Source of the DNA: Octopus bimaculoides
Lineage: Eukaryota
Reading direction: 5' to 3'
NCBI RefSeq assembly: GCF_001194135.2
Contig: NC_068984.1
Span: forward strand, 56,101,875 to 56,165,874
DNA length: 64,000 nucleotides
Part shown: positions 4,372 to 41,252 of the stretch, one piece after another
Layout: every line of letters starts with the position of its first letter
Numbering within the stretch: the stretch's first letter is position 1
Notes under the pieces: generated by a model
Told to the model about the DNA's origin: nothing
What the model saw: only the letters and a program-made list of their open reading frames with translations
Database searches by the model: none
Translations under genes and position numbers: made by a program

Positions 4372-4392
4372 ATGAGTTATGCGGAGAGTGAC
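4372..4392 (+). CDS. Candidate first coding exon (MSYAESD) of the DPP6/DPP10-like gene
   Basis: caacATG AGT TAT GCG GAG AGT GAC followed by GTGAGT at 4393. A at -3, consensus donor, phase 0 compatible with the 41138 exon ([19 protein letters not shown]...). Lies at the end of a CpG-rich non-repetitive patch. No transcript evidence. Confidence 0.6.
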
Positions 4393-4452
4393 GTGAGTAA
4401 TGTTCGTGTTATCAATTATTCACCCTCTGCATCTTTACATCAAAAATGCGCG

Positions 4453-4486
<34 letters not shown>

Positions 4487-4491
<5 letters not shown>

Positions 4492-4695
4492 TTATAAATA
4501 TACAGGGATTAGCAATTGAGTTGCTTCTCCAACATACTGAAAATTTAGAAATAGCAGTCAAAGAGCTACTGATTCCAAACTACAAATTTTTCTCTAAAGT
4601 AGTTTGGAATCAGTAGCTCTTTGACTGCTATTTCTAAATTTTCAGTATGTTGGAGAAGCAACTCAATTGCTAATCCCTGTATATTTATAATGATA
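4487..4695. repeat. Perfect 97-bp inverted repeat with 15-bp spacer
   Basis: 4487..4583 is the exact reverse complement of 4599..4695 (checked base by base); spacer AAATTTTTCTCTAAA. Confidence 0.95.
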
Positions 4696-5431
4696 AATAG
4701 TTTTACCGATAAAGGTTTTTTTCATACTGAACTACTTGGCAAAATTGTTAATTATTAATTCTATTATTAATTGACGATTCTCTGCCCTTATTCTTGTATA
4801 TATATATATATATTCGCACACATTTGTATACATATACACATACATATTTGTACGTATACACACAGACATATTTATGTATATACATGCGTGGTTACATGTC
4901 GATTATTTTTATGTCTATATTTTTATGTCGAACATTAATTCCAATATGCATACTTATATTCTTTTTCTTGCATGTGTGTAGATATATGTATGTATAGTTT
5001 TCTATATATATATATGCTTGTGTGCATTTGTGTATAAATATGTATGTATGTGCGAATGTATGTATTTATATAGGCATGAATGTATGTATATACGCATGAA
5101 TGTATGTATATGTGTGTATGTGTATCATTGTCGTCGTTGTTATTTTAACGTCTAATTTTCCATGCTTTTATGGGATGAGATAGAATTCGTTGAGGGAAAT
5201 TTTCTACAGCCTGATGCACTTCCTGTTGCCATTCTTCACCTGTTTCCAAGCAAGGTAGTATTTTCACATGGCTGGACGTGATCACATGGAAGATTGGAAG
5301 CGAGAAAAACCACTTGTATGACGGAGATACTCGTTTACAAATACATCAAGAAATTAATGTCAAGAAATTGAGACATGCACAAGCACAGACGTTCCGCATC
5401 CTCCCCGTAAATGTGTGTGTGTGTGAGTATG

Positions 5432-5470
<39 letters not shown>

Positions 5471-6671
5471 NNNNNNNNNNNNNNNNNNNNNNNNNNNNNN
5501 NNNNNNNNNNNNNNNNNNNNNNNNNNNNNNNNNNNNNNNNNNNNNNNNNTTTGCATAGAAGGAAAAGAAAACAGCATTCAATCCCAAAAATAAATGTATT
5601 TTAAAAAGATCAAAAAATATCAACTAGATTATGGCTGGAAGATAAGTGCTTCTTTCATTTTCATCATCATCATCATGGTCGTTTAACGTCCGCTTTCCAT
5701 GCTAGCATGAGTTGGGCGATTTGACTGAGGACTGGTGAAACCAGATGGCTACACCAGGCTCCCTGTTTACCAAATCTACTTACAATGCTTTGGTCTGCAC
5801 TTGCCCAGAGCGTCACACAGTGGGACCAAACATAGAACCACATGATTGAGAATCAAATTCTGTGTATGTATATATGTATTTATGTATGTATGTTTTATGA
5901 ATGTATAAAGGGCTGTATTTATGTAAGGGCATACATGGGTCATGGCCAAGGACCCTTTTAACTCAGAGGAGCCTAAAGCCTAGAGTAAAATTTTTTAAAA
6001 TATATGTACATCAAACAGATAAATAAATTATAATCTTCTTTTTTTCACTTAGTTGATTTTTTTTTAATTCTGTAGAGTTCTTTAAAAATTAATAAGCCTT
6101 CTTTTGATCTATTAGGCCCTTTTAGATTTTAAAAGGTCATTAAATTTAACTGAGTCTCTCTGAATCCACCAAGGCCCTTTTAAGTTTCAGACTGTTTGGG
6201 GCTCCTAGATTTAATGGAGCCCTCTTATCTTGCTGTTTTGAATTAGCTCTATTTTTAGTATTGTTTTTTTTTTAAATACTTAGTGCTTGTTTTCTTCTGA
6301 TATGAGAGCAGTCAACAGCAATGTATTATCCAAATAAATGAACAAGGTAACATGTCAGAAACTATCAAAGTGCTGGCAGCCATTAAAGTTATAGAATACC
6401 CATTAAAAATTTTGTTTGAAAAATACAAAATTGATATGAAATTATAGATATTCTTTGTGTTTAGATTATTAAGATTGGTTTTTTAGCCATACATATTCTT
6501 ATTGTTTATAGTCTTGACTGAGGAAGACAAATTTATTACTTTTGTCATGCACAATGATATGATTGACAGACATGTAAACAGTATAAAATTACATATGCAA
6601 AATTGTAGGGCTCTCCCTACAATTGGGTCCAGAGGCCCCACTATGTCTAAATCCAGCCCCATATATATATC

Positions 6672-6889
6672 CAAGGGGGTGCTCAAAAGTTCCTAGCTTT
6701 AAGAGTGTCATGAAAGGCTTGGTTGGAGGCCCAACCTTTCCAAGTTCTTTTACAGGACTTAGAAAAACTGAAGGACTACTGCAATAAATGTGTGAATCTG
6801 AGAGTGAAATATGTTGAATAAAATCATAATTAACTGATCCTCCTGTATTTTCTTTTATCCAAAACCAGGAACTTTTCAACACCCCCTCG
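6672..6889 (+). mobile_element. Mariner-derived MITE (218 bp)
   Basis: Ends CAAGGGGGTGCTCAAAAGTTCCTAGCTTT and AAAACCAGGAACTTTTCAACACCCCCTCG are inverted repeats, set in TA repeats. Interior retains a mariner-like C-terminus, NKCVNLRVKYVE*. Confidence 0.8.
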
Positions 6890-8523
6890 CATATATATAT
6901 GTACACACACACAGACACACACGCACACACATATAATATTGGTTTCAAATTTTGGCACAAAGCCACCAATTTTGGGATGTGGGAAAGAACTAGTTGATTA
7001 TATCAATCTCAGTCTTCAACTGGTAATTATTTTATTTTTAAAGTTTGAAAGACCAAGTCAACCTTGGCAGAATTGGAACCCAGAACATACAGATAGATGA
7101 AATGCTGCTAAGCATTTCGCCTGGCATGCTAACGATACAAATGTTATATTAACACACATTTATTTATAGTATGTAGATAGGGTTATAATGCAAGTTGTGT
7201 CCTCATGAAACACATCTGCATATTTCAGTTCTCCAAGGTATATTTGTAGAGGATATGAATTATATGAGAGTTAAAAATACTGGTAGATAGTTATTGCCGA
7301 ATAATTACATATTAAAACAAAAAAAACTGGGAAATTTTTTTTAATATTATTTATTCTGTATTACATACGTCTTTTTTTTTACCAGTAGGAGTTATATAGG
7401 GATACATGTGGAAAAACATCTAAGACATCTATTAGCCATTCATCAGATCAAGAATTGAAAATATATTTTTCCTAAATCACACACCTGCATATCATTTATA
7501 CATACATCATCATCATCATCATTTAACATGCTAGCATGGGTTGGACAGTTTGACAAAATCTGATGGGCTAAAGCCTGCATCATGATTTCTACAGCTTGAA
7601 GCCTTTACTAATGCTAACCACTTTAGAGCATGTACTGTGTGCTTTTCCTCATGGCACCAACACTAGTGAGGTTGCCATGCAGCTTACAGGACTACGAACC
7701 CACTGAGAGGCAGCTTTATGCTAGGATATGAAGAAATAAGCAGAACAGGTTTCTTGCTGTAGAGGGGCTACATGGCCAGTTACATTTTGGAAGAGAAGGT
7801 GGGGGTGATTGGGTAGAACAGTCAAGAAATATAATAGAGATAAAAATATGTCTGTGTAGATCCTCAGTGTACAAGGTGAGTAGAAGTAAATGGGCCCAGA
7901 ATTAATGTAAGTGTGGGTGAGTAGATGTTGCAAGTGTGCATAGGAGATGGTGAGGGGGTGAATATAATGAATGAAGTGTTGAATGAATGATATGAGGAAG
8001 GGAAGTTGGGAAAAGTAGGTGACAACTGTAGAGACTGGATATAATGAATGGTGGATAAAGATTAAGTCTGATCAATGAAGTGTGGAACTGAGAGTTGCAA
8101 AAATAGTAATGATGATACAGTAAACAGAGGAAGGATGAGAGAGAGAGATGAAACAGAGAGACAGATGACAAGTGGTTGGGTAGATTGCAAGAGTATGTGT
8201 GGGGAAAATGGTAGTTACTATGTATAGGGTATGGAGGGAGTGAGAGAGGTATACAGTATTAGAGAAGATAAAATGATGTGATAGCTCAGGAGAGGATGGT
8301 GTCAAGATAAACTGTGGGTGGAGAGGACACTCTGTTAAGGATGAGGGATGGATAATCAAGTCAAATGGTTCCCAGTTGTGAGAAAGATTACTGTCTCAAA
8401 GAAAAGCTGCAGTTAGAGAGATGAAAGAAGGTGGGGGTGTTTTGAAAGAGAAATTGGGCAAAGGGTCCAGTCATGCATGTGTATGTGTTTGTACATATAC
8501 ACTCACACATTCATACATATATA

Positions 8524-9803
8524 CAGGGTGTGGTGAATAAATTGTCATCTAAATTACGCAAAAATGAAAATAACACTGACATCTCATTTAACAGATATAT
8601 TTACCAAAATTACATAAAAATATCTTGAAATAGTAAAGAGTAAAATCGCCATTGGCTTCAACCACAGCCTCTAGATGACTCCAGAATCTCCTGCAACTCT
8701 TCTGGATGATCTCCTTGTTTAAGTTGGTTAATGCTGCCATAATCCTTGCCTTCAGTTCATCTTTGGTGTTACAAGGAATTTTGTTGGTCTCTCACTCAAT
8801 TGCAACGCACACATAATAATCAAGGGGGTAAGCAGTCTGGGGAGTTAGGTGGCCAGATGTTAGGGGTGATGTGGTTGCAGAAATTGTCTGACAGCCATGA
8901 CTGGGTTCTCCTGCTTGTGTGGTATGGTGCAGATTCCTGTTGCCAGACATAGGGTCTTCCAGCAGCCACCCTCTTGACCTAGGGCAGCACTACCTCCTCC
9001 AGGCACTTGATGTAGGCCTCCATGCTGTGTCTGAGGCCGTGTGTGAAGATGAATAGAAGTATAACATCACCATCACTAGTGATCACTCCAAACACCATGA
9101 TGTTGACTGGATGTTTGATTTTTATCACTCTTGGCACATATTTTGGGGACATGGCAAGCCAACAGTTGTTCTGTGTGTTCACCATCTGACCCTGGCAGAA
9201 ATTTTTCTCATCTGAGAAAAACCAAAGCATTTTCGGTTGGAGGGGATGCTTGAGTTTGTTCAAAAGCTTCATAGCACAGTTTTTCCTCTTGTCTTTGAAG
9301 GTTTGAGAGAAAAATTGGCCCTTTCTCATCTTGAATGAAGAATACCAAATGTTTTCATGCAATACCTGCCTGAGAAGAAACTCAGACACTCCCATGTCCC
9401 TGGTAATGGACCTGATTGACTTGGTGGGATTGTTATCAATCATAGATTCAATCTTACCCACAAATTCAGGAGTTCTTTTCTTATTAGAACGATTGGAGTA
9501 AGTTTTCCGAGCTGCTGTACCTTTGTAATCACCAACAGACTCATCCAGCTCTTTCCAAATCCTCAGCACTGTCTCTCAGATTGAGACTCAAACACTCTGA
9601 AATGTCCATACCGGAGATTCTGGCATGAATGCCAAGCAGCACAGCATGTCATTTCCAAATTTCTGGCAGAGTGAATTGTGTCATGGTGCTGTTTTTCCCA
9701 ACTGACCCTACTATACTGTGTAGTCAACAAAATCACAAACAAACAATGCACACGAGTGAAATTTAAAAATATAAAATGGTGACAATTTACCCATCGCACC
9801 ATG
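8524..9803 (-). mobile_element. Full-length decayed Tc1/mariner-superfamily element of the DD37D (maT) type, about 1.28 kb
   Basis: TIRs CAGGGTGTGGTGAATAAATTGTCATC (8524) and reverse complement of the right end CATGGTGCGATGGGTAAATTGTCACC (ends 9803), both flanked by TA. ORF 8979..9569 has LWFFSDEKNF and MVFGVI. It continues past a stop as YVWQQESAPYHTSRRTQSWLSDNFCNHITPNIWPPNSPDC, then frameshifts to DYYV: 37-residue spacing, with the second D mutated to E. Confidence 0.92.
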
Positions 9804-10138
9804 TATGTATGTATGTATATATACACACACAACACTTTCAAAAATTAGTTTTGCTGCTTTGAGCAGGTCTTCTCAAGAATCTCATGCCCTGGTCTTCCTA
9901 ATCCCTTATCATCATCTCTGAGGTTCAATGTCCTTATATTATCCTTCACCATATCTTCCTGGGTTTCCTTCTTCTACTAAACTCCATTCACATTTAGTGA
10001 TCAGCACTTCTTTACACAGTTATTCCCATCCATATGTATCACATGTCCATACAAGTGGTGGAAAACTTTATTGGGCTACTAAGGACTAATGATGCTGGTA
10101 AGAATGACATGTACTGGTACAGTTTATAGAAATCAAAA

Positions 10139-10184
<46 letters not shown>

Positions 10185-13100
10185 TCATCAACATCATCGT
10201 TTAACGTCTGCTTTCCATGCTAGCATGGGTTGGACGATTTGACTGAAGACTGGTGAACCAGATGGCTACACCAGGCTCCAATCTGATTTGGTAGACTTTC
10301 TCTAGCTGGATGCCCTTCCTAATGCCAACCACTCCGAGAGTGTAGTGGGTGCTTTTACGTGCCACCGGCACGAAGGCCAGTCAGGCGGTACTGGCAACAG
10401 CCACACTCAAAATGGTGTATTTTACGTGCCGCCTATATATATATCATCATCATCATCATCATCATCATCGTTTAACGTCCGCTTTCCATGCTAGCATGGG
10501 TTGGACGATTTGACTGAGGACTGGTGNNNNNNNNNNNNNNNNNNNNNNNNNNNNNNNNNNNNNNNNNNNNNNNNNNNNNNNNNNNNNNNNNNNNNNNNNN
10601 NNNNNNNNNNNNNNNNNNNNNNNNNNNNNNNNNNNNNNNNNNNNNNNNNNNNNNNNNNNNNNNNNNNNNNNNNNNNNNNNNNNNNNNNNNNNNNNNNNNN
10701 NNNNNNNNNNNNNNNNNNNNNNNNNNNNNNNNNNNNNNNNNNNNNNNNNNNNNNNNNNNNNNNNNNNNNNNNNNNNNNNNNNNNNNNNNNNNNNNNNNNN
10801 NNNNNNNNNNNNNNNNNNNNNNNNNNNNNNNNNNNNNNNNNNNNNNNNNNNNNNNNNNNNNNNNNNNNNNNNNNNNNNNNNNNNNNNNNNNNNNNNNNNN
10901 NNNNNNNNNNNNNNNNNNNNNNNNNNNNNNNNNNNNNNNNNNNNNNNNNNNNNNNNNNNNNNNNNNNNNNNNNNNNNNNNNNNNNNNNNNNNNNNNNNNN
11001 NNNNNNNNNNNNNNNNNNNNNNNNNNNNNNNNNNNNNNNNNNNNNNNNNNNNNNNNNNNNNNNNNNNNNNNNNNNNNNNNNNNNTATCTCACCTATGTAT
11101 GTAAATTATAAACAATTAGCAAGAGTATCATTTGTAAATATTGTAAAGTTTGTATTTTCATACATTCAATGAAAAATATCAAAACATCCTGATTTGTGTG
11201 TGCATATACATATACACACACACACACACACATGTACAACAGGGGTATTTAATTTTGCTGAATTGTATGAAGGGGGCATTGGAAAAAGAAAAAGGGTAAT
11301 AGTTAAAAAAAAAAAGATGACACAAAATTAAAAGAAAATACTGGTTTCATTTAATGTCACACAATAACATAACAGAAAGAGTTATACCAGATATTAACAG
11401 CTGGTGGTATATTTTTAATGTTTACAAACTACATATGATACGGTAGTATTGTAAATGCCCGGTTATTCATTGTTAATATTTATACAGTGGTTTTACCGTG
11501 ATTATGGATCTAATTTTCTCATTATTGCTTACTCCTAAAGAATGTCAATTACCTACAGATTAAACAAAAAACAAGTCTACCTTCAATAAGAATGTGTTTA
11601 TTTTAAATTTATGAATTTTTATTTATATTCAGTTTCCACTCCGATATGCAGACCTTAATTGATCATTAAAAAGTATAAGTCTGTGTTTAGACCATCAAGA
11701 GAAGTGGGGGCACTTGAGACTTTATTTTCCAGTATTGGAAAAACATTATGATTTGAGATTATTGCAATTTTAAAGTTCTAGGAGGCCATGATCTATTCAT
11801 TAAAGTAATTGTAGTTGTTTGTGTCTGATGCAACTGTGTGGTTTACCATATCACTCCACTGTATCATTAATTTTGTTCTTTTGATGATGAATGGCAAGGA
11901 ATCCATTTTTAGCCATATAAACATTCCAGCTTAAAAAATTCCCCAAGTTCAGTTTTCTAAATTGAGTATTACAGCTAATATGAACAGATTTCGAATCAGA
12001 ACAAAGTGAATAATGACAAGGTGTACTGAATAATGGCTTGAAGGGGTGCTTTTTATAAATCAAATGCAAAAGTGAAATGTGTAAACTGATAAAGCACTGT
12101 CACTATAAGAGCTATCTGATAAAGCAAGGATTCCTAAGATGGTAGAATCAGACATTCCACAGACAACAAAATCTTCAGTTACTAGGTACCAATAGTTTAT
12201 TTCAATGCTTACAATTGTTTTTTTCTCTCCATTATTTTAAGCATGCTTCCATCAAAAGAACTGGCCCTTGCAATAACATATGGAGTAGGATTTGATACCA
12301 TTTATTATTATTTTATTTTAACAAAATCTTCACAAACCAAAGAAAACTCATTCTCACTCATTCATGGTGCCAAATACAAACTTCCACTGAAGTGTTTGAT
12401 GGGGTGATATTGATGATATTCATTTCACATTTCAGGACTGGTCAACAGTGCCAGCTTAAGACATGGGCACACTGGGCCATTGTCCTGGAGCTTCATGAGC
12501 CTAGAAGCCCAATTGTGACCTATGTGTGCTGTTGCTTGCTGTCAATAAATAAAGACCTGAAATTTAGGCCCAACTGGTATTTATTTCATCGATCCCAAAA
12601 GAATGAATGACAAAGTTGACTTTAGCAGAATTCAAACTCAGAACAGTAAGATGGACTAAACACAGCAAAGCATTTTTGTCCAGCTTGCTAACAATTCTTC
12701 CAGCTTACCCCCTTCCTTCTACAGTTAATAATAAACACAATACTATAAGACAATCAAGTGTTCAATATTACAACTGCCGTGCCATTTTAGTGACCTAGTA
12801 TTATTCTTTTACTTGTTTCAGTCATTTAACTGCGGCCATGCTGGAGTACTGCCTTTAGTCAAACAAATCGACTCCAGGACTTCTACTTTGTAAGCCTAGT
12901 ACTTATTTTATCAGTTTCTTTTGCCGAACTGCTAAGTTACGGGGATGTAAACATACCAATATCCTCTGACAAGCGATGGAGGGAGGGGGAAGCACAGACA
13001 CACAAATATATACATATATATATATATACGACGGGCTTCTTTTAGTTTCTGTCTACCAAATCTACTCACAAGGCTTTGGTCAGACTGAGGCTATAGTAGA

Positions 13101-14430
13101 AGACAGTTGCGCAAGGTGCCATGCAGTGGGACTGAACCCGGAACCTTGTGGTTGGGAAGCAAGCTTCTAACCACACAGCCACATCTGCGGCTGGTGTTTA
13201 TTTATCTACCAGTTCTTCCATCCACAAATTTATTAAAAACAGTTTGCTGTTCTATTACATACCAGCAGCTTGCAGACACACAGGATTCTTGTGATCTCAC
13301 ATAAATGAATATCCAATGCTATGAATTTGTTTTTCGTTAATTCTATTTAACGTTAAATAACAATAATATATACAAATTATTTGCTTATAACTAAGGCATA
13401 CAGCATTTTTTTATGCATTAAAAGAAAGTTATAATTTACCATTTTCATCATGGTAAATCTAATACTGGAAAAAATTCTGTGCTTCCCCACCATTCTTTCT
13501 GTGCCATAAGTACATGCTGCTGGTTTTGTTTAACGATTAATCCAGCTCTCATCATAGGCTTGTTCGCCCGGACATGATCTGGGTTTAACAAACAACTATT
13601 TGTATTGGCATCTAGCCAATAAGCTGAAGACTGCATAAATTTTGTGGCGGTCAGTGTTTATCATTATGCCATATGGTTGATAAATACACCTTATAACATT
13701 TTAATTAATGCTGGCTAGTATAGCTAATTATTAATTTGCAAAATTAAAGATGCTGAATTATCCTTTATTTTTCAATTAGTTTCACTTTTCTGAATTTTCA
13801 CCTCTAAAATCTGCTTTGATGATATATATGATGATCGTAATTGTGGTCTCTGATCGATTTTGATGTACAAGAGATGTGTGTGTGTGCGCGCGCACGCGTG
13901 CGTTTACTATTCGGTAGATTCACAAGACCTAAGGTGTTGTAACCTTCGAACTATCATTTGTCTCTGTTTCGCCACTTGTGATATCGTATCGTGACGTATC
14001 GTATCACAAGATCTCGACTTCGGCGAAGAGATGTCGGTATTTCTTTTATAAATATTAACAGGATGACCAGAAAGATTGACAAAAATCGATTCTAGAAGAC
14101 TTGAACTCAGAACTCTGCACAAACCATAAGACAAACAAATGACGGAGCCTATCCACTGTACTCAACCTACAATAAATAACGACTGAATTGCTTAAGTCAC
14201 CATACAGTTTTAAGAATAAAGAGCGCATTGGACAGGGCATTCCTAGAACTTTGGGGTGCTTTTTCATTTTTCTTTTTTTTCACTTCCTGATACTCATGTA
14301 GCGGGTGCAAATGAGAAATTGCTAGCCTACTTCACTTAAAAATATAGAAAAACCATTGCTTACCTTTTCTTTAATCAAATCTGTGTATAGGCACAGGCAT
14401 GGCTGTGTGGTAAGAAGCTTGCTTCCCAAC

Positions 14431-14673
14431 CAGGGCCGGCGCTAGCAAGTGTAGGATCCAATTAGAGAATTGCCAGTGGAGCCCTCTACTCTACAAAAGC
14501 TGAAGATTGATGTTTTACGCTTTGTGTAATACGCTAATCCCAGCCAAAAAGCGTTGAGGGCTTGAGGCTGCACCATTAGCCGCAATGATAAAATTCGTCA
14601 TTACGTCCTCTACTCGAGTGTGTGTGGGACACAATTTGAACAAACCTGTCTAATTGACTTAAAACCAGCCCTG
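14431..14673. mobile_element. hAT MITE (243 bp) inserted into a SINE
   Basis: Termini CAGGGCCGG...CCAGCCCTG; 8-bp target duplication TTCCCAAC/TTCCTAAC. The interrupted SINE reads continuously across the insertion. Confidence 0.85.
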
Positions 14674-15072
14674 TTCCTAACCACATGGCTTCGGGTTCAG
14701 TCCCATGTAGCACCATGGGCAAGTGTCGTCTACTATAGTCTCAAGTCAGCCAAACCTTTGTCAGTGGATTTGTTAGACGGAAACTAGTAGACCGTCGTAT
14801 ATGTTTGATTCTGTGTTTGTCTCCATCCCCTTTTTGACAATTGTTGTTGATTTATTTACGTACCCGTAACCTAAAACTTCAGTAAAACCGACCGATGAAA
14901 TAAGTACTGGTGTCAATTTGTTCGATTAAACCCTTCAAAGCGCAGTTCCAGCATGGCCACAGTCCAATGTCTGAAACAAATAAAAGATAAAAGAAACGAT
15001 AACAAAATTATAAATTACACATTCTTTCAGCATTAGTATGAATTTTCTAAACTCTTAAAATGATATATTTAA

Positions 15073-15290
15073 CCTTTTAGCATTTAAACCGGCCAAATCT
15101 GGCACAAATATTCTACCAGTTTATGTTCAAACCAACCGTATCTAACCTCCAGTACCTACTCCACAATGCCGCTCTAAAACTAAACAAGCAATCATCAAAA
15201 TTTCAAAACTACGAGAATACACATGATTGATTCAAACCAATGTGAATAAACAAGCATTACATTTGACAGAGTAATCAGAATGCTGAAGGG
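15073..15290. mobile_element. piggyBac-type MITE (218 bp); partial second copy at about 23356..23530
   Basis: TTAA-CCTTTTAGCATT ... AATGCTGAAGGG-TTAA (TTAA target, short TIRs). The internal sequence recurs at 23356. Confidence 0.8.
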
Positions 15291-15919
15291 TTAAAAATCT
15301 GTGACATACTTGGATACCTTTTGCGATTCATCGTTTGAGAACTTTTATCCCAGCATCACAAAATTGCATGTATTTACGGTCGGAAAAACGTCTGCTTTGT
15401 CAGAAAGTGTTGTGTAGCTAAAGAATAAAATACCTAATAGAATATGCATTACCGTCACTCCATTGGCCTAGATATACGTAATAATACGAAAATATAGATG
15501 GTTTCATTATAACAAAAAGTGACATTCCAATTACATTAGCCTCCATCCAGATGAATCTGAACACTCACAGAAAGGATGTGATAACCTATTTACTATAGTT
15601 CATTGAAAATATTGTTCTACAGTGACTTCTTACATTTATATCATTGCTTAATCAAATAAAATGAGTTGCTATGCATATTACCCAGCCTGAAAGCATAGGT
15701 TTATAAATATATTTTATCGTTCAACGTGTACTGAAAGTAAATGACAAGCCGCGGCAATTTTTTTCCTTCCCTAAACCTTATCGCATTTGTTTCTAAAACA
15801 AATATTGTCAATAATGTGAACTAGATGAATTAAGAATGTTCATTCAACAAGTTCCCTTATATTTTCCTCCATCAATGCATAACAGAGCTTAATTACGCAA
15901 TTGTATGTGTGTGTGTGTG

Positions 15920-15957
<38 letters not shown>

Positions 15958-16021
15958 GAGAGATGCGTGTATGTAGATCTAGATGTATATGGAAACAATA
16001 ACATATGTATATATATATTTC

Positions 16022-16274
16022 GGTAATCTTCAAGTTTAGGGAGATAAAAAAAATAAATAAAAATATTCAAGGGAAATAACTGAACGACTTACCAGTATTA
16101 TCCGTTTTCTTCTAGCTGTTTATAAATAAATCACACCCTAACCCTAACGTCAATCAAATCACGTGTGTGATTTATTTATAAACAGAGATGTACGGAAAAT
16201 ACTGGTAAGACGTTCAGTTACGTCCCTTGAATATTTTTTTTTATTTTTTTTATCCCCTAAGCTTGAAGATTACC
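16022..16274. mobile_element. Fold-back MITE with about 115-bp TIRs and 9-bp TSD (Mutator- or Merlin-like)
   Basis: Arms 16022..16136 and 16165..16274 are imperfect inverted repeats with GGTAATCTTCAAG...CTTGAAGATTACC termini. Identical 9-bp flanks ATATATTTC at 16013..16021 and 16275..16283. Confidence 0.85.
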
Positions 16275-28276: not shown

Positions 28277-28320
<44 letters not shown>

Positions 28321-29267
28321 GATGAAGTAAACACTTCTGCCAAAGCAAGGAAGCCTTATGAAGTTATTCTTTAGTTTGCAGAGATAGCTCTATGGTTTAA
28401 CTACTGCTTACACAGTGAGGTTAAATGTATGCCTATTGAACATACACCTCATCATCATCATCGTTTTAACGTCCACTTTTCCATGTTAGCATGAGTCAGA
28501 TGGAAGTTTGATAAGGCAGCAGATTTTCTATAGTCAAATGCCTTTTCCGTCACCAACCCTCACCTGTTTCCAAGTGTAAGGACATATTTCCCCATACCTA
28601 GACATAGTCTCACAGAAGAATGGAAACAAACAACACTGAATGCATGACAGAGATATTCATTTACAATGATTATGCAATGTCAAAGCAAGAAGACAGTAAC
28701 ACATACACACACATATGTGCATACAAACATCATATGCACACAGACACACACATGTGCTCATTATATCCAATGAACTCCTGTCAGTTTCCATCTACCAGAT
28801 CCACTTACAAGGCCGTGGTCAGTCTGGGGCTTTAGCAGAAGACACTTGCTCAAGTTACTATGCAGTGGGATCAAACTCAGGACCATGTGGTTGGGAAGTA
28901 AACTTCTTGCCACACACCCACGTGTGCACCTATGACTAAAAAAATAGCTCTATTACAATATATCCATTTACGTATTGCTTTAGTATTTCAGTTAATTGGT
29001 GTGTGTGTGTGTGATAAATGAAAGTGGTCCAAGAATCTAGGTGGTTACTTCAATTAAAACTCCTGGTAATACTGGCTAACGGAATGTATAGTGACGAAAT
29101 CAATATATAACCAATGTTACATAATCATTGCTCATATTCATGATTTATTACCCATATGTTGTTGAAACAGCTACAGCCTAGGAATAGTTGTGATACCGGT
29201 ACCTCCATTCTTCACCAGACCGACCAAAGCCTTGTGAGTGGATTCGGTAGACAGAAACTGAAAGAAG

Positions 29268-29495
29268 CGAGCTGGCAGAAACGTCAGCACACCGGGCGAA
29301 ATGCTTAGCGGTATTTCGTCTGCCGTTACGTTCTGAGTTCAAATTCCGCTGTGGTCAACTTTGCCTTTCATCCTTGCGGGGTTGATAAATTAAGTACCAG
29401 TTATGCACTGGGGTCGATGTAATCGACTTAGTCCCTTTGTCTGTCCTTGTTTGTCCCCTCTATGTTTAGCCCCTTGTGGGCAATAAAGAAATAAG
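29268..29495 (+). mobile_element. tRNA-derived SINE family B, nested in a family A fragment
   Basis: gagctggcagaaacgtcagc...gttctgagttcaaattcc...ctttgcctttcatcc...taagtaccagtt. Other copies (approx.): + 33820..34040, 36765..36945, 39626..39815, 51293..51460, 51655..51870; - 1208..1400, 6940..7130, 12550..12700, 14040..14130, 21880..21950. Confidence 0.85.
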
Positions 29496-32400
29496 AAACT
29501 GAAAGAAGCTTGTTGTGTGTGTGTATATATATATATTCTTTTATTCTTTTACTTGTTTCAGTCATTTGACTGCAGCCATGCTGGGGCACTGCCTTTTAGT
29601 CAATCAAATCAACCCTAGGACTTATTCTTTGTAAGCCTAGTACTTATTCTATCGTCTTCTTTTGCCAAAGCACTAAGTTACAAGGATGTAAACACACCAA
29701 CATCAGTTGTCAAGCGATGGTGGGGAGACAAACACAGACACACAAATAGAAATATATATGATGGCTTCTTTCAGTTTCCATCTACCAAATCCACTCAATA
29801 TATATCATCATCATCATTTAACATCCGTTAAGTTACAGAGACATAAACACACCAACACCAGTTATCAAGCAGTGATGGGGACAAATGCACACACACACAC
29901 ATATATATGCATAACATACTTCTTGCAGTCTCCATCTACCAAATCCACTCACAAGGATTTGATCAGCCTAAGCATTAGTAGAAGACACTTTCCCAAGGTG
30001 TCACACAGTGAGACTAAACCCAGAAATATGTGGTTGGGAACCAAGCTTCTCACCACACAACTACACCTGTATCTATACATATTAAATGTAAAAGAATTGA
30101 CTGGGTACAACATAAACATCACAACAGTGAAACTAAGTCATAAGTTCAGTCCAGCAAGAGCTTTCAATTCCAGATTTTTATTTGATTTAAATATTGACAA
30201 ACTAAACAATTTGCGAAATAAAGAAAAAATTTCAAGTTAACACATTAATCTGTTTATGTTCGTTAACATTATTTTGTTCCTCAAGTTGTCTTTTATCTAA
30301 AATACCGCAATATCTCGGATAAGTTGCATTCATTGTTTTTCCTGTCGTTATATTGAAGAAATTCATATGTATTTCAAATATCAATAGAAGATAAACACAA
30401 TTATGTGGAGCAAAGCCAAAATTTTAAAATTTTATTTTCTTGCTTGTTTGTTTTCTAACCTATAGACAAAAATAAGCCAACTTAGAAAGAAAGCTAAATA
30501 TGATTATGCTGGACTAAAGATGATAGGGTAATAATAGGTTGGACAACGAACATCAAATTCATTCTTTATAAACAAAGCAATAAATCTTAATGTTATTGTA
30601 AATTTCTGGTGAAGAGAAACCCTTAATTATAAGGTAAATAAACATACATATGTACATTCACGTATACATGTAAACATACTCACAATCACATGTACATGTA
30701 TATGTTTATACAATTGAATGTATATGTAGTATACTTATAAACATGTTTGTATACTATGTTTATGTTTCTATGTATATATGTATGTGTGAGTATAGATGTG
30801 TGTATGTGTGTGCGTATGTGTACATATATATATGTTGGTGTGTCTGTACACATGTTATATATCATCATCATCATCTTCATCATTACCATAGCCTTTTAAT
30901 GTCCATCTTCCTTGCTAGCATGGAGTGGATGAGTTGACAAGATCTGACAGGTTTGAGGACAACGTCATACTTTAGTGTCTGCTTTATCATAGTTCCTAAG
31001 GATGGAAAACCTTTGTAATACCAACTTTACAGTGTACTGTTTGCATGTGTGTGTGTGTGTATTTCTTTCCCTCTGCTTGTATAGGCTGAAGGGGCACTTA
31101 TTTGAGACAACATTTTTATGGCTGGATGCTCATCCTGTCACAGACCCTTTCCTTGACTAACAGATCAGATCACAGAGCTATGGAATGCATGACAAAAGTT
31201 TATCACTCAGACAATCTCATGTGAGAAGCAGTGATTTCAACATTCATGCACAAGCACACATACATGCCATCATCATTTCAACATCTACTTTTCTATGATC
31301 ATATGGATCAGATGATTTTGTCTATGTTCTTCCTGTTGCCAAACCTAATTTGTTTCAAAGTAAGGTCATATTTCCCCATGACTAAACATATTTTAACAGA
31401 ATTGAAATGATGGACACCACTTGTACGATGCTGATGTTTATTCACAGTTATCATGGCAGTGTCAAGACAAGGGGACACTAAAACACACCAACCTATGCAT
31501 ACAAAAATATACAAATACATGTACAAAAACATACATATACAAATATACATGCAAATACATACCTACACACATACAAATACATACATATATACGATGGGCT
31601 TCCTTCAGTTTCTGTCTACCAAATCTATTCACAAGGTTTTGGCTGGCCCAAGGGCAATAGTGGAAGATGCATATCCAAGGTACCACTACAGACACACACA
31701 TACATGCACGTGCATACATACAACTAGTTTCCATGTAGTTTCTACCGACCAACTTCACTCACAAAGCATTAGTTGTCCTGAATCAATAGAAGTTATTTTC
31801 TCAAGATTCCATACTCTGGAACAGGTCCTTAGGCCACATTGTTGTGGAATGAACTTCTTAAGCACACATCCATACCAGCACATAGGCATTTCCCCTGCAT
31901 CTGTCTTCAGCTGAGCGATCCTAATCTTGTGAGCTCATGGGTGTTGGTTTCATGTAAAAAGTACCCATGCCGGTGCCATATAAAAGTGCCCATGCCAGTA
32001 CACTCAGTAAAGTGGTTGGCATTAGGAAGGGAGCCCAGACAGCTCTTTAGCGGGCCTTCTCTTGTCAAACCATCCAACCCATTCCACCATGGAAAACAGA
32101 AGTTAAATTATGATTATGGTGGTGGTGGCGGTGGCAGCAGTGGTGGTAGTGGTGTGTGTGTGTGTGTGTGTATTCATTCCTTTAGACATGCAATGTTGAA
32201 AACATGACTTGACTTCTTTAATAGTAGATTTCCAATATTTACTCAAAATTTTGTCCAACTTTCAAGTATGCTTCTCTCTCATTTTGAAGACATGTCATCA
32301 AATTTACCATGCTATGAAGCACTCTTGAGATTGAGACGAAATCTATAAACTATTGAATATTATTTACAGTTCAATAAATAGCAAAATTTTAAAATTGACA

Positions 32401-34622
32401 AAATCTGACAAGAAAATACTGAATCTGTACTATACTTACATTTTTATGTCTACAAGTTTAGGAGCATGTGTGTGTTTGTCTGAGAAGGGGTGATATGTGT
32501 GTATGAGATACATGTAATTTGAACCTACATATAAACATTCACTCGAAGTGCATATTCTGCATGCTTATATTTTCCTGTGGCATACAAGCAAATATAATAT
32601 AGGTACATATGCATGGCATGTATGTATATTTTGAATATGCTGCAGTTTAGGCCAAATGAACCTGGACATTCATTGATCACTGCTCTTGGGCACCACTAAA
32701 TGGGATGATACCATCACAATAGGCACTATCAGAGGGATTGACAATGCCAAAATTGTTGTAATCTCCAGTCAACAGCTGATGAATTGGTTCTCCTGGAGAG
32801 CAAGTTGCATGTCATTATCATCATCATCCCCATTATAATTATCCTTTATATGCTTCCTTTTTTTTTCTATTGACATTGTTTCAATTAGTTTATAAATTAA
32901 TGAAAAATTTAGTGAAATAGATTTGTCATTATTAAATTGGTGTGTAGAACATAAATTAAAATGAAAGTTTGAAGGAAAATTTTGATTTAGACCACTTTAA
33001 AACAGGAATTCTATATCAAAGAACAAAGGGCAATCTGACGTGGGTTAGCCAGATACCCTTCCTGATGGCAGCCTTTATTTGTTTCTTGAAATGGTATTGA
33101 TGTGACTAGCCCATAAGACTTTCTTGATAAAGAGAATATCCATTTTCTATTCATGATGAAATTAATAGCTCATAGTTAACATTATCTTACACATAAAATT
33201 GTATGTTTGTCAAATTCAAGAAAGAAAACTATGAATAATTTTAATCAATAAGAAATTTCATTTCTTTTATTGAATTTCTATTTTAGTTTCAATTGCAATT
33301 TCTGTCCAACTCTCTCTAATCTTTTTTATGCATTATCTTAGGTTGTTTTTTTTTAGTTTAGTTGCTTATATATTTTTTAAAAAATAAAAATAAAATAAAA
33401 CTCATAAAAATATACTAGGAGGGTAAAGAAAAATGCTGTTTGAATTCATATGAAATTAAGGCTTGGAACTAAGAATTCTAAATGAAACTGTTAACTCCAA
33501 GCTGCCAATACTGTCTTAGTTAACAGAAGATGCAAGAGAGACCAAATGGCTTTGAAGTTTGTTTTATAATAAGATCCTTGATCAGTTCCACTGCTTACCA
33601 TCTTAGACAAGTGTCTTTTAGCATAGCCTCAAGTCAACCTAATCATTGTGAGTGAAATTGGGTACATACAAACTGTTTGAAAGATTTTTGAATTGATAGC
33701 ACCTATTCTTCCAGCTTTGTCATATGTTGTCTAACTGATTCTCCCAGTGAATTACTTAAGGATACATATATTTGTAGAATATTCAGCCAGCTATATGTTA
33801 TGTCAATAAGTAGGCCAGTTATGGTAGCGAGTTGGCAGAATTGTTAGCATGCAGGGCAAAACACTTAGTGGCATTTCATTCATCTTTACGTTCTGAGTTC
33901 AAATTCCACCAAGGTCAACTTTGCCTTTTGTCCTTTCAGAGTCGATAAATAAATACCAGTTGAGCTCTGGGGTCGATGTAATCGACTTAGCCACTTCCCT
34001 GAAGTTGCTAGCCTTGTGCCAAAATTTGAAACCAAAAAGTAGGCCAGCTATTCCATAGCTTGAATAATTGGAACACTCTTCATTGAAATTGACCGAGATC
34101 AATTGTCTTTTAGCTTTTACTTGTTTCAGTCACTGGACTATAAAGGATTTTAGTTGAACAAATCAACCCCAGAACGTTTTTAAGCTTAGTAATTATTCTG
34201 TTGGTCTCTTTTGCTAAACCACTATGTTATGAGGATACAAACAAACCAATACCAGTTGTGAAGCAGTGGTGGGACAAAAATACATACATGTATTTCTCTC
34301 TCTCTCTCTCAAATTGTGCTTGTCCTTGCATACAGGAACGTCCCCTGTATCCCTCTTCAGCTGAGCGTTCCTAATCTTGTGGGCTCATGGGTGCTGGTGC
34401 CATGTAAAAGTACCCATGCCAGTGCTGTGTAAAAGCACCCAGTACACTCTAGAAAGTGGTTGGCATTAGGAAGTGCATCTAGCCATAAAAACCATGCCAA
34501 AACAGACATGGAACCCAGACAGCTCTTCAGCTGGCCAGTTCCTAACAAACCATCCAATCCATGCCAGCATGAAAAATAGATGTTAAATGATAATGGTGAT
34601 GATGATCAAGATGATATGTATA

Positions 34623-34688
<66 letters not shown>

Positions 34689-34926
34689 ACTCAGCTGTAG
34701 AAACACTGCCAAATCAGATTGGAGCCTGGTATAGCCTTCAGGTTCCACCAGTCCTCAGTCAAATCGTCCAACCCATGCTAGCATGGAAAGCGGACGTTAA
34801 ACGATGATGATGATGATGATCACATGACTGACCAGGCTATCAGATGTTGTTACACATCGCTGGTCACAATGCGTTTTGCATTGTTTTAGCCTTCAAATGA
34901 ACCACCCCACTGGCTAGGCGAGCAGG

Positions 34927-34974
<48 letters not shown>

Positions 34975-36974
34975 TATGCCTCTTTCAGTTTCAGTCTACC
35001 AAATTCACTGACAAGGCTTTGGTTGGTCCAGGACTATTGTATAAGACACCTGCCAAAGGTGCACCACATAGTGAGACTGAACCTAGAATCATGTGGCTGG
35101 GACACAAACTTCCTACCACATAGCCATGTCTCCACCCACTTAATAGTTAACACCCACTTTACTCCCTATCACCAATACCCCAGAAACACACATATCCACA
35201 GACTCCAGTAATACCCACCCCAACTGATATCCCCTCCCCCACTCCTGATGACTGAATCCACAAGACATGAATAAGTGGATGAAAGGATGAATCACTGGTG
35301 TAATTAATCACCACAGCCATCAACTTAATCCGTATAATCACTGGTTATATCATCCCAGCCCGACCATTACCACCACCACCACCATCATTGTCATCATCAT
35401 CATCATCACCACCACAACCATTTTTGTAATCATCTTTATCATCAGTTGTAACTTTAGAAATAAAAAGTGTCAAAACAACAACTGCAACAACAAAACTAAT
35501 ACTTCCCACCACCAGTAGCACTACCACCACCTCCACTATCACCACCACCACTATCAACAACAACAGCAACAACATGAGCATACAAAATATGTCAGTGGTT
35601 GAGATTATTTGTAAATCAGCCAAACTGTTAATTTAACAGTGTAATCTCCTTTCAAATTCCCATCCTCAGCCCTTTTTTATTTATTTTTTTAAAATATTTT
35701 TTATTCTTATTTATTCATTTATTTATTTATTTATTTATTCATTTATTTTCACTATCTTAGGGGGCTGCCTGTTCCATATCTTGAAAATCAGTTCAAATCA
35801 AATAGGCTATCAATACCGGCTAATAAGAAAATCAGAATAAATAAATAGATAAATGAATAAATAGATAAATAAATAAATAAACCAGTGAAGTTCCAGTCAT
35901 AAGTTTCTAGTTATTAGGTTCAATTTGTAAAGGTCCATTCCATGGACAACATTCCTGATTTGTGAGTCACCACAGACAAGAAGCATTTCAATATAGGGTT
36001 CCACAAAACTGCTTGCAGTCAACAGTGATTCTGATCAACAATAACAATCTTTGCCATTATCGCCATCATATTCAGCAGCATCACAATACATTTCACCCTC
36101 ATTGTCGGTCGTCGTCATCATCACCTTCATTGTCATCAACATTATCATCGTCATTATTGTCTTCTTCAATGTCATCAATATCTTCTACAGATCTATCAAT
36201 AAATTCACTATCTCTTCTTTACATTGACCATTAATATTATGGGCCCTTCCAGCTAATAAAAAAATATTATTATTATCATTATCATTATTATTTGCTACCA
36301 TTATATTCTTCCTCATCATCTTTACTCTCATTACCCCTATTTATTGCCTAGGTAACATCATGTTTCCATCATTCCACAGAACATTATCCTTATCTGGTTG
36401 TGTAAAAAGTCTCCAAGATACATTACTTTACTTTGATGTAATTACACTGAATAACATTAATCACATTTAGTTGGAGATTAAATATTAGACTTTATTATTG
36501 CAATTTTTATTGTAACATTTCTTCTTTCCCCACTTCTGCTTTTATGTTTTTGTCCCGCTGTCCCCTATTCATTACTCTTGTGACAATGAAATACATTATT
36601 ACTGTAATTATCATGTTTCCAACAGTCCGATATGAGTTTCTACTGCACCACCCAGTGCGCTTTTTGTTGTGTGTGTGTGTGTGAGGTGTGTGCAGCATTG
36701 TACAATGTGGGCCAAAAGTCATGAACCAAAACATTTCACTAGGCAGCAAGCCGACAGGATTGTCAGCATACTAAATAAAATGCTTAGCAGCTTTCATCTC
36801 TCCCTATGTTCTAAGTTCAAATTCTGCCAAGGTCAACTTTACCTTTCATCCTTTCCGGGTCGATAAAATAAGTACCAGTTGAACACTAGGGTTGATGTTG
36901 GCTTCCCTTCTCACCAAATTGCTGGCCTTGTGCCAAAATTTGAAACCATTATTATTATTATTATTATTATTCAT

Positions 36975-37290
36975 TGTGAAGGCACGTGTATTGGTGGTTA
37001 GGGTTTTCGGCTTACAGTCATAAGGTCATGAGTTCAATTCCTGATGATGCATTGTGTCTTTGATCAAGACACTTTATTTCACATTGCTCTAGTCCACTCA
37101 CCTAGCAAAAATGAGTAGTACCTGTATTTCAAAGGGCCAGTCTTGTCACACTCTGTGTCATGCTAAATCTCCCTGAGAACTACGTTAAGGGTACATGTGT
37201 TTGTGGAGTGCTCAGCCACTTGCACTTTAATTTCATGAGCAGGCTTTTCCATTGATCAGATCATCTTAACCAATAGAGTGCCAGTTATTA
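36975..37290 (+). mobile_element. Further tRNA-derived SINE family (D); related heads at 46385..46680 (+) and 760..990 (-)
   Basis: tggtggttaggg...catgagttcaattcctg (A/B boxes), then caagacactttatttcaca shared with the 46385 copy, which also has accctgcaatggactagtc...caggggc, resembling the V-SINE central domain. Confidence 0.65.
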
Positions 37291-38520
37291 TTCATTTTGT
37301 TCATCATTTACAAGTACATGTGAATTCATCATTATTTTATTTATTTTATTCAATTATAGAAAAATGAATGCATGTCTTTGACAATTCCGGAGCATATTGA
37401 ACTTATTTTGTTTTGGCCCACCCTATATTTTGGAGAATGAAGACTGATGTTTCTATGCTACATCTGTTTTACTTAAATTGTTTCTGGTGTTACTTTAATG
37501 TTTCATCTGTTTGTTGCATAGGACAATGATGCACAAGTTGGGTCATATTGCTCAGAAGTGGTGAATTGGGTGGTGATTGTGTCTCATGTGTATTGTGCCA
37601 TATTGCTGTGTGGTAATTGCACAAAGTATGTGTTTTGTGGACTATGTTATATTGGCTGGTGATTATTTAGACCCTAAATTTTAGAGTATATTATTGGGTC
37701 GTTAATGTGAAGAGTGTATATTGAAAGGATTGTGTCATATCCTTGTGTGGTGATTGCACAGAGCTGTGGTCCCCTGCCCTTTTTTTTTTTTTTCTGTATC
37801 ACCGACTTAGTTTCATGCAAGACAATTTTTCCACAGGCCAGGTGATCTTGTACATAACAAAACACAATAAGGTGCATAATATATAATTAAATTATTATGT
37901 ATGCAATACATAATATTATGTATGCAATACATAATATTATGTATACGATACATATATAATGCAAAAATACCTTGCAGACAACCATCTTTTATCTAATCTC
38001 TTGTTTCAGTCATTAGACTGGGGCTATGCTGGGACACTGCCTTGAAGAATTTAATCAACCCCAGTACATATTTTTTAAAGCCTAGTACTTATTTCATTAA
38101 TCTCTTTTGCCAACCGACTAAGTTATGAGGGCATAAACACATCAACACCAGTTGTCAAATGGTAGTGGGGGACAGACACATACACAAGACAGACTTCTTT
38201 CAGTTCCCATCTATCAAATCTACTCATGAGGCTTTGGCTGGCATGAGGCTATAGGAGGAGACACTTGCCCAAGATGCCATGCTGTGAGACTGATGCTGGA
38301 ACTATGTAGTTGGGAGGCAAACTCCTTACCACACAGCCATGCTTTTGCCTTTAGTCAATAAAATAGAAATAAAATTTTAAAATCTAATCTTTCTATGCAG
38401 CTCCATGCCAAATGATCCAAGACCCAATACACTGGTCCACAACCCAGTTGTTGGAGATCCATGGGGTGGAGCATGTGTTGTGTGGATTATGTTATATTAT
38501 TGGATGGTGATTGTCTAGAG

Positions 38521-38773
38521 CAGTGGTAACTATCTTTTTTGCTTACGGACTCCTTTGATTCCTATTTTACATGGGTAGACCCTCCTAGCCATTCAATGTT
38601 TAAAAAATCCTATTATTATATTTTTATAATTAAATATTATCAGGAACTGTATAAAAAAAAAATGAAAATATTCTGTATATTATAAAGGTATAACCAGCTT
38701 ATTGCACATAAATTTTAACAAAATCTTATATTGCCCCTTAAGGGTCATGTGGACTCCAATTGAGAACCCACTG
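38521..38773. mobile_element. hAT (Charlie-type) MITE, 253 bp
   Basis: CAGTGG...CCACTG termini; flanks GTCTAGAG/ATCTAGTG resemble the NTCTAGAN 8-bp target of Charlie elements. Confidence 0.7.
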
Positions 38774-39851
38774 ATCTAGTGTATAAGCTGTGAAGATTGT
38801 GTTATATTTTTAGACGGTGATTGTGTAGTGTATGTTATGTATGTTTGTTTTATCATGTGATGATTAAGCAGAGTATATGTTCAGCAAGTTGTGCAGAAAG
38901 TCTACTGTGTGAATTGTGCTACTGAATAGAAAATGTCTTGCATAGGATGTGAACTGTGGCAAACAGGGCCTTTTTCTTTCTTTTTTTTTTTTAATACAGT
39001 ATGTAGAGTAGTGAGCCTTGATATAATTTTTATGTTTTTCTTCAAATTCTTCTTCACCGTGCCTAGAGTTCCAATTATTATTGGTACTGTGTTCTCACTT
39101 TCATACCCCCACTCCATATCCTGCTTATTTCCATTTCAAGATCCTTGTAGTTTGATAGTTCTTCAACTTCCTTCCTCATAATGTTTTAATCTGAAAATTC
39201 TTTTTTCTTTGTTTTCATTAAAACATTTACAACAGTTTATGCATAATTATTTGCTACTTCTGCTTCTGTTGATTCCACACCTAATAATACAATGTAATTT
39301 ATTTTATATGCCTTTTAAAAAAAAAATGCTTTTGGGTGTATATTTGATATTCTTGAGAACATAAAACTCCAGTTTTGTGCCATGTCACATTTAGTGCAAT
39401 ATCATTTTCCAATATTCTTGTGACTAATAAAGAAATTTTATTATTACTATTACTACTAATGATTATTAATTACTATTTGTCTTGCTGTTGTTAATACTAC
39501 AATTACCATTTTTGTTATAACATTACAAATTCCACCTTCTACTGTTATACTATTGCAAATTCCACCTACTACTGATACTACTGCTGTGGCTGCTGCTGCT
39601 GCTGCTACTACTACTACTACTACTAAGGCCACAAGCTGGCAGAATCGTTAGCATTCTGGACAAAATGCTTAGCGGCATTTCATCTGCCTTGATGTTTTGA
39701 GTTCAAATTCTGTTGAGGTTGACTTTGCCTTTCATCCTTTCAGAGTTGATGAAATAAGCACCAGTTGTATTCTGGGGTCAATGAAATCAACTTACCCCCT
39801 CCCCACAAAATTTCAGCAGCAGTAGTAGTAGTAGTAGCAGTAGTAGTAATA

Positions 39852-39906
<55 letters not shown>

Positions 39907-40013
39907 CGTTAATGGATCTCCAGTGGTTTTGACAGACTACCTATTCATAAAATTAATATGAAAATGGCCGAGTATTCTACTGATGCGTGTACCTTTTAAC
40001 ATAATACTCAAGC

Positions 40014-40366
40014 GCTAATACTACCACTACAACTATTACAACTGCCCCTATTATTGCTACTATGATCATTATTACTGCTTCAAGGGAAGGGATAGTTCTA
40101 CAGAATTTATACAAGCAGAAAGGATAGTTGTTGATGAGACAAAACAAGGTTGAAACAGTCCTGCAATCATTTATGGCATATGTCTTTTTACATAGAGCTT
40201 TATTGTCCAGATTATTTTACTTGGTGAAGAAGAAAAACATAAAAATTATATCAAGGCTCACTACTCTACATACTGTATTAAAAAAAGAAAGAAAAAGGCC
40301 CTGTTTGCCACAGTTCACATCCTATGCAAGACATTTTCTATTCAGTAGCACAATTCACACAGTAGA
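40014..40366. repeat. Mosaic of duplicated local segments
   Basis: 40014..40081 matches 40565..40632; 40082..40097 matches 40663..40678; 40098..40221 matches 41435..41561; 40223..40366 is the inverse of 38901..39058. Confidence 0.9.
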
Positions 40367-41137
40367 TATTGTGTGGACCTTTGAATTACATGTACAACCA
40401 ATCTTGTGGGCTTCTGCATAGCTTCAAAATTCTCGATTTCACTCACAAGTCTTGGACAGACCTAAAGCTATAATAAAAAAAAGACACTGGCCCAAAATGT
40501 CACACAGTGAGATTGAACCCAGGAACTTGTGATTGCAAAGCTAAATACTTAACCATTTAGCTGTGCTAATACTACCACTACAACTATTACAACTGCCCCT
40601 ATTATTGCTACTATGATCACTATTACTGCTTCTGCTTATTCTGGTTGATACTATAAGTTAATAAGGGAAGGGAAAGTTTTGCACATACACAATGCTTCAA
40701 AAAAACCTTTGTGACAAAGGTAAGGTTAAACCTTAAGACTAAAACAGTATTTACTATATAAACTTCATGCATATGAAGTTGTTAATATAAAGATTGGTTA
40801 TTTTTTCTCAACATAAATGTACTCTTACAGGTTCTTACAGATTTGCGTTTCCCCTCTGTTCAATAGAATCAATTGATCTGCTAGTAATAGCAGCAAAATA
40901 TATCTCAAGTTACACTCCACTGTTTAAGTATGGAACAGTATATTGAACAATGTAATCCATGGTAAAACATAAAGTCAGGATGGTCAATAGCCAGGATACC
41001 TGTGATCATAGGTATTACTAAACATACTAAACATGTCTTCTGTAACCACCATGTATCTTCTATTATTGTTAATATTGCTTCTGTTATTATTATTGTTTGC
41101 CACAGTTTCTATAACTACTATTTTCTGTTATCCCCAG

Positions 41138-41252
41138 GAACTGGTTGGAGATGCCCAGAATCAGCGGAACTGGCGTGGAATTGGGATTGCACTTCTTGTT
41201 ATCCTCGTTGTATGTGCTCTTATTGTGACTGCTATGATTCTTGCGACTCCGT
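41138..41252 (+). CDS. DPP6/DPP10: Internal coding exon of a DPP6/DPP10-like (dipeptidyl aminopeptidase-like, Kv4 auxiliary subunit) type II membrane protein; cytoplasmic juxtamembrane plus transmembrane segment
   Basis: Translates [38 protein letters not shown], closely matching the recalled vertebrate DPP6 segment [38 protein letters not shown]. Acceptor ttttctgttatccccAG ends at 41137; donor GTAAGT starts at 41253. 115 nt, phase 0 in and phase 1 out. Confidence 0.93.

Follow-up and report, generated by a model that had tools for sequence, protein, structure and literature searches.

The 64,000-nt window analysed here, the forward strand of Octopus bimaculoides contig NC_068984.1 from position 56,101,875 to 56,165,874, contains two exons of a gene for a type II membrane protein of the DPP10/DPP6 family. 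Both lie on the plus strand: a first exon, termed 1A, from 3736 (or earlier) to 4401 (window coordinates are used throughout), and a second exon at 41138..41252 that encodes a single transmembrane helix and is shared with other first exons. The splice between 1A and the shared exon was observed directly in RNA contigs. At a probability of approximately 80%, 1A is best read as an alternative first exon of this gene that would give rise to a plain short variant of the protein.

The 5' untranslated leader of exon 1A spans 3736..4371 on the plus strand and is covered by RNA contigs from 3736 to 4094 (sequencing runs X14 and X4) and from 4115 or 4116 to 4402 (runs X4, X14, and X36). The 5' end of the leader lies at 3736 or earlier, and microsatellites break up the leader at approximately 3686-3800 and 4064-4140. 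On the assembled piece that carries 1A (3007-5470), the repeats are (CT)n at 3686-3733, (CA)n, (ACAT)n at 4064-4140, and (TA)n at 4455-4490. The start codon, caacATG at 4372-4374, is followed by AGTTATGCGGAGAGTGAC at 4375-4392 and by GTGAGT at 4393-4398; these letters are as quoted in the original prediction, an earlier reading of this DNA that had proposed a seven-residue first exon here. The ATG at 4372 has an A at position -3 and is the sole start in its frame, in which a TGA is present at 4357. The coding part of 1A (4372..4401, plus strand; ATG AGT TAT GCG GAG AGT GAC GTG AGT AAT) encodes the peptide MSYAESDVSN and ends in phase 0. This peptide is acidic and contains two or three potential phospho-acceptors (Ser/Tyr).

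In a 3,891-nt RNA contig from run X4, positions 1-287 correspond to 4116-4402 of the window and positions 287-401 to 41138-41252. Because a single G is common to both segments, the GT..AG intron between 1A and the shared exon is 4402..41137 on the plus strand (GTTCGT ... TTATCCCCAG), with a nominal length of 36,736 nt. The 30 letters preceding 41138 in this contig are ATGAGTTATGCGGAGAGTGACGTGAGTAAT, i.e., 4372-4401, and the contig runs on for approximately 3.5 kb past the part corresponding to 41252, into later exons. The same junction was found in five runs from four studies (X4, X14, X36, X37, and X40), and a junction unitig of 316 to 317 nt was identical in the last four of these runs. The junction unitigs stop 30 nt inside the shared exon, at the distance predicted for merging paths in a graph with k=31. 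In four DNA runs of three studies, unitigs agree with every letter of 4118-4475 and pass straight through the donor. As the RNA contigs leave the genomic sequence at 4402 while the DNA unitigs continue, the contigs represent spliced molecules and not DNA carry-over, and the genomic letters are sound. Furthermore, exon-only word shares of 0.75 to 0.78 were recorded around 1A in many further RNA-like runs of the same organism. It is this RNA that supports the exon: upstream of 41138 on the same strand, six ATG...GTRAGT candidates in phase 0 arise, and 860 with any GT, and the sequence pattern alone therefore carries no weight.

The donor in use is a weak one, AAT/GTTCGT at 4401/4402 (the slash marks the exon boundary here and below), situated 9 nt 3' of the consensus-looking GTGAGT at 4393..4398 (plus strand), which is kept in the mature mRNA as GTG AGT and read as Val-Ser. 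Thus, the 1A product begins MSYAESDVSN/ELVGDAQ, with 10 isoform-specific residues and the frame kept. The original prediction had placed the end of the exon at 4392 (GAC/GTGAGT), so that MSYAESD would be joined to ELVG. GTGAGT at 4393 is indeed a perfect consensus donor, the resulting join would be in frame, and a rare form shorter by 9 nt could drop from the contigs. However, all 1A junction contigs of the five runs keep GTGAGTAAT/GAACTGG and join 4401 to 41138, the sequence expected of the shorter form, GAGAGTGAC/GAACTGG, occurs in none of them, and the unitigs are unbranched through 4392, every 1A contig passing on to 4401/4402. It is therefore very unlikely that the seven-residue version is the form produced by 1A; a minor in-frame isoform, three residues shorter and made by way of the 4392 donor, is conceivable. 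Of what had been predicted, the ATG at 4372, the shared exon at 41138-41252, and their in-frame junction were recovered in RNA, while the donor proved to be 9 nt and the peptide three residues off, the RNA giving ten residues in place of seven. No junction by way of 4392 was seen in the RNA contigs, and 41138 is also entered from two further sequences, described below. The predicted type of N-terminus, very short, acidic, and cytoplasmic, fits the ten-residue predicted peptide.

The assembly around 1A is fragmented. The exon lies on a 2.46-kb piece (3007-5470) between gaps at 2865-3006 and 5471-5549, and no short-read DNA unitig bridges either gap because the unitigs break at the flanking microsatellites. 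A short, gap-bounded piece of this kind might be misplaced and foreign to the gene, or the junction might stem from a chimeric contig. However, the identical junction recurs in independent runs of four studies, the unitigs require exact overlaps of 30 nt and end precisely at a GT..AG pair, and the 3.9-kb contig carries on through later exons; misplacement of the piece would alter the length of the intron and not the splice. An artefact of either sort is barely credible, and chimeric assembly was rejected on the recurrence of the junction across studies at the GT..AG pair. The spliced RNA places 4401 and 41138 on one strand and in one transcription unit. The gaps at 5471-5549, 10527-11084, and 26423-26432 are all intronic, and the continuity of the reading frame is therefore independent of them. 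The intron of 36.7 kb that had been proposed is thus real as a long intron spliced in RNA, but with three assembly gaps inside, its length is nominal only.

The shared exon (41138..41252, plus strand) encodes 38 residues, comprising a 14-residue juxtamembrane segment and a 22-residue transmembrane helix, and ends in phase 1. It is preceded by a pyrimidine tract and CCCCAG and followed by GTAAGT. Its product carries the DPP6/DPP10 signature (E/D)L(V/G)...QRNW(K/R)GI.IALLVIL with type II topology, a signature that distinguishes these proteins from DPP4. In a search of solved structures in the Protein Data Bank (PDB), the matches were DPP6 chains only, with human DPP6 at E = 3.8e-12 (7w6t_I) and 4.5e-11 (7ukg_I), and the alignment to human DPP6 begins exactly at ELVG and runs through the helix to LLTP. 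This bears out the earlier assignment of the downstream exon as DPP6/DPP10-like. An exhaustive search of 1.84 billion representatives returned 222 proteins matching the shared exon at E <= 0.001. The named matches are annotated as inactive dipeptidyl peptidase 10(-like), DPP6, or DPP4-like and come from molluscs, a nemertean, ticks, a mite, a mosquito, and a sea urchin, the molluscs and the nemertean being nearest. The next exon (CTTCAATAGAGG...) was not found in the read sequence of the window.

Judged by eye, relatives available in full length that share this transmembrane exon carry the extracellular beta-propeller (DPPIV_N) and alpha/beta-hydrolase (Peptidase_S9) domains of the family, and most of the invertebrate relatives that were fetched keep the GWSYGG serine motif (P0009, P0083, P0095, P0120, and P0131). 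Likewise, the fly DPP10 orthologue modulates Kv4.3 and retains peptidase activity (PMC4873792). As these invertebrate relatives and fly DPP10 keep the catalytic serine, the octopus gene is better named DPP10-orthologue-like than "inactive." The same work showed that, in mammals and fly, the transmembrane region, and not the ectodomain, mediates Kv4 binding (PMC4873792). By analogy, the product of the octopus gene may associate with Kv4/Shal channels, an expectation drawn from its conserved transmembrane region only.

Exon 1A is one of three different upstream sequences that join acceptor 41138 in the RNA contigs. The second, 1B, reads ...GCTAACGCACAACAGATTCCACCAGAACAA/GAACTGG (...ANAQQIPPEQ/ELVG) and was found in runs X3, X14, X36, X37, X40, X41, and X42. 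The third, 1C, ends in CACCAGTTGATCTTGAG and reads ...AAAGTCAAACACAATCACCAGTTGATCTTGAG/GAACTGG (...SQTQSPVDLE/ELVG), and was found in runs X1 and X41. Both are absent from the read sequence of the window, and are located either outside it or in its gaps; they were seen solely at the loose ends of RNA contigs, and the 1C join was seen without a start codon. The start codon of 1B is visible in a relative (P0001). Indeed, 1B is kept in this distant relative, in which transcript L001 (631-681; P0001) encodes MERKIPPANAQQMPPEE/ELVG and the shared exon has, by eye, approximately 78% nucleotide identity to that of the window. Where 1A and 1B were both present, contig depths were 43 versus 150 (X14), 15.6 versus 38.4 (X36), 9.6 versus 27.9 (X37), and 8.5 versus 23.6 (X40), so that 1A accounted for some 22 to 29% of the 1A plus 1B junction depth, contig depth being a rough measure. 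In X4, 1A was the sole form seen. With at least three first exons spliced to a single transmembrane-exon acceptor, the gene has an alternative-first-exon architecture, as had been proposed from the 1A pattern.

Exon 1A presumably has its own promoter. Its transcript uses the weak donor at 4401/4402 to reach acceptor 41138 of the exon for the juxtamembrane segment and transmembrane helix, and translation from 4372 would then yield a subunit in which a ten-residue acidic cytoplasmic N-terminus precedes the ELVG...QRNWRG-transmembrane core. The main effect of 1A would be the choice of promoter, and with it the site and timing of subunit production, together with a minimal N-terminus. A subunit of this kind would be expected to resemble the "plain" short variants in its behaviour, as opposed to the pore-blocking DPP6a and DPP10a, because 1A lacks a hydrophobic and basic ball of the MNQTA type.

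Several observations weigh against this reading. Passing over a perfect GTGAGT for a poor GTTCGT 9 nt downstream is an uncommon choice, and the 4392 donor may see minor use, of the rare kind that contigs drop. In the raw-read runs X21 to X23, of which approximately 6% each was sampled, the depth over the gene was at most 7 and no informative loose ends were found before 41138. The ectodomain and catalytic serine of this gene lie outside the window, and the gene is known here from its transmembrane exon; MSYAESDVSN is a peptide predicted from nucleotide sequence. Three ATGs, at 4169, 4173, and 4280, precede the start codon within the 1A leader; their open reading frames of 54, 49, and 17 codons are out of frame and all stop by 4334, before the main ATG, and these three ATGs probably dampen translation from 1A. 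In a related organism (organism B), no alignment of at least 80% identity was obtained over 4264-4454, a stretch comprising the start codon, coding part, and donor of 1A. Organisms F, H, and I contain 100% of the words of the transmembrane exon stretch, but among the matches listed with 75% or more of the words of the 1A stretch, none of the three appears. It is thus possible that the 1A peptide arose recently and has no particular role.

These points can be drawn together in a different explanation, in which 1A is a young, lineage-specific promoter and leader, the ATG happens to be in frame, the upstream open reading frames damp translation of a functionless peptide, and at most the extra transcription of the gene body matters. 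Organism B does retain an orthologue of the leader part at 3791-4090, with approximately 85% identity (29 mismatches and 17 gap letters over 300 nt), while conservation of the coding part and donor was not detected, and a pattern of this kind would be expected of such a leader. The close relatives in which the transmembrane exon is shared but which are not among the listed strong matches to the 1A words, the distant relative that keeps 1B and not 1A, the upstream ATGs, the weak donor, and the microsatellite surroundings all point the same way. However, expression of 1A recurs in several studies, at around one quarter of the combined 1A and 1B junction depth, and 1A is the sole form in X4; short acidic N-termini with Tyr and Ser are also found repeatedly in the orthologue models of other invertebrates. 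Moreover, the negative results on 1A conservation are limited by short unitigs and by the 80% identity threshold. The explanation by a young leader is thus possible but doubtful, and the reading of 1A as a first exon that encodes a plain short variant is preferred.

Two further features of the shared exon were apparent from the comparison of RNA with the genome, both A-to-G differences on the plus strand. At 41222, ATT (Ile29) is changed to GTT (Val); the X42 contig had G throughout, as did three of seven reads in X22 and two of two in X23. At 41234, ATG (Met33) is changed to GTG (Val) in five of seven X22 reads. At both positions the 5' neighbour is T, and all 11 DNA runs of the organism (8 samples) contain 100% of the sampled reference words over 41192-41264. 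A-to-I recoding is common in neural transcripts of coleoid cephalopods. The two sites are probably A-to-I recoding within the transmembrane helix, polymorphism being the alternative.

The flanking introns also contain transposon relics, at 55147-55566 and 54563-54916 on the plus strand and at 8979-9569 on the minus strand. One relic open reading frame (ORF) carries an Integrase_H2C2 zinc-binding domain (E = 3.4e-12), another has a sub-threshold match to Helitron_like_N (26.8 bits against a cut-off of 28.9), and a transposase-looking one of 196 amino acids had no Pfam match.

Previous research has shown that the cytoplasmic N-termini of vertebrate DPP6 and DPP10 vary through alternative first exons, while a core of 25 exons is common to the variants (PMC3973911, PMC3366920). 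Among these, the pore-blocking DPP6a/DPP10a class is defined by an MNQTA motif from exon 1a (PMC3366920). The original prediction had hinted at a link between 1A and fast inactivation. MSYAESDVSN contains no MNQTA and falls outside the DPP6a/DPP10a class as defined in that study, and MNQT was found in none of the 150 best library representatives. A role for 1A as an equivalent of the fast-inactivation exon 1a was accordingly rejected on sequence. Library N-termini resembling DPP6S, DPP6L, DPP6K, and several of the DPP10 type all diverge exactly before ELVG or ELGS. The DPP6S-like N-terminus is MTTAKEPSASGKSVQQQEQ/ELVG, the DPP6L-like one is MASLYQRF...DDEDELVG, and the DPP6K-like one is MKEKAMIKTAKMQGNVM/ELVG, in which the 17th residue is Met, as described previously (PMC3366920).

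A corresponding pattern was seen in invertebrate gene models. Four distinct N-termini precede ELV in the nemertean Tubulanus polymorphus (models X1 to X4), three in the tick Ixodes scapularis (X1 to X7), two to three in the bivalve Dreissena polymorpha (X1 to X3), and two each in the bivalve Sinanodonta, the sea urchin Strongylocentrotus purpuratus (X1 to X4), and the mosquito Anopheles. These isoform sets are automated predictions, while the 1A, 1B, and 1C joins are direct in RNA contigs. More than half of the matches P0004 to P0151 are short ORFs called on genomic DNA across a CAG acceptor and are not real N-termini. A Q stands directly before the motif in 79 of 138 representatives, often after what resembles a hydrophobic translation of a pyrimidine tract, and this pattern suggests that a phase-0 intron has been conserved here. 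As the nemertean, tick, bivalve, sea urchin, and mosquito models diverge exactly before ELV, the alternative-N-terminus architecture very probably predates vertebrates, being represented in models of five other invertebrate phyla or classes, and it is probably bilaterian. The earlier suggestion of an origin before vertebrates is thus in keeping with these models, and the invertebrate N-terminal architecture is already visible in public annotation.

Some of the invertebrate N-termini are themselves short and acidic and contain Tyr or Ser: MTDPYPIYDDE (tick), MADAYPMYDDE, MTEADNYDD (Anopheles mosquito), MASEDGDYEE (from a transcriptome), and MKVIEEQE (bivalve). Ten residues are too short for any homology claim for 1A. 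Together, such N-termini might form an ancient protostome functional class of DPP10-type variants, distinct from the vertebrate "a" variants and serving, for example, as a phosphorylation-regulated tag for Kv4 trafficking or gating, with A-to-I recoding of the channel-contacting helix as an additional layer. This more far-reaching proposal is unlikely, and for 1A the reading as a plain short variant is retained.

In work on Kv4 subunits, the N-terminal "tool kit" of DPP6 and DPP10 has been treated as a vertebrate feature (PMC3973911, PMC3366920), and none of the papers in the collection searched was found to discuss alternative N-termini of DPP10 in cephalopods or octopus. The locus provides transcript-level evidence that an invertebrate orthologue runs at least three first exons into the same phase-0 intron before ELVG. 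It is of modest evolutionary interest, as the N-terminal-variant architecture would not be a vertebrate invention, and the isoforms lend themselves to direct tests together with Kv4/Shal in a heterologous expression system. Annotators should note that splicing here uses a weak GTTCGT as its donor and not the textbook GTGAGT 9 bases upstream.

Compared with the known systems, the octopus gene resembles vertebrate DPP6 and DPP10 in that multiple ATG-bearing first exons are joined in phase 0 to a shared ELVG/ELGS...QRNW(K/R)GI-IALLVIL exon; the position of the join is identical, and the variable parts are short and cytoplasmic. It differs in that none of 1A, 1B, and 1C resembles in sequence any vertebrate exon 1 variant considered here, all three lacking MNQTA and being unlike the DPP6K, S, and L types, and in that the 1A peptide, at 10 residues, is shorter than any named mammalian variant compared. 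Drosophila DPP10 belongs to the same family, and its transmembrane segment and flanks, which are sufficient for Kv4 binding, closely match those of mammalian DPP10 and DPP6 (PMC4873792); the shared exon of the octopus gene encodes this conserved region as well. That study describes no N-terminal variants, whereas alternative first exons are the point here. In the invertebrate DPP10-like models, too, two to four N-termini per gene diverge exactly before ELV, some of them short and acidic like that of 1A.

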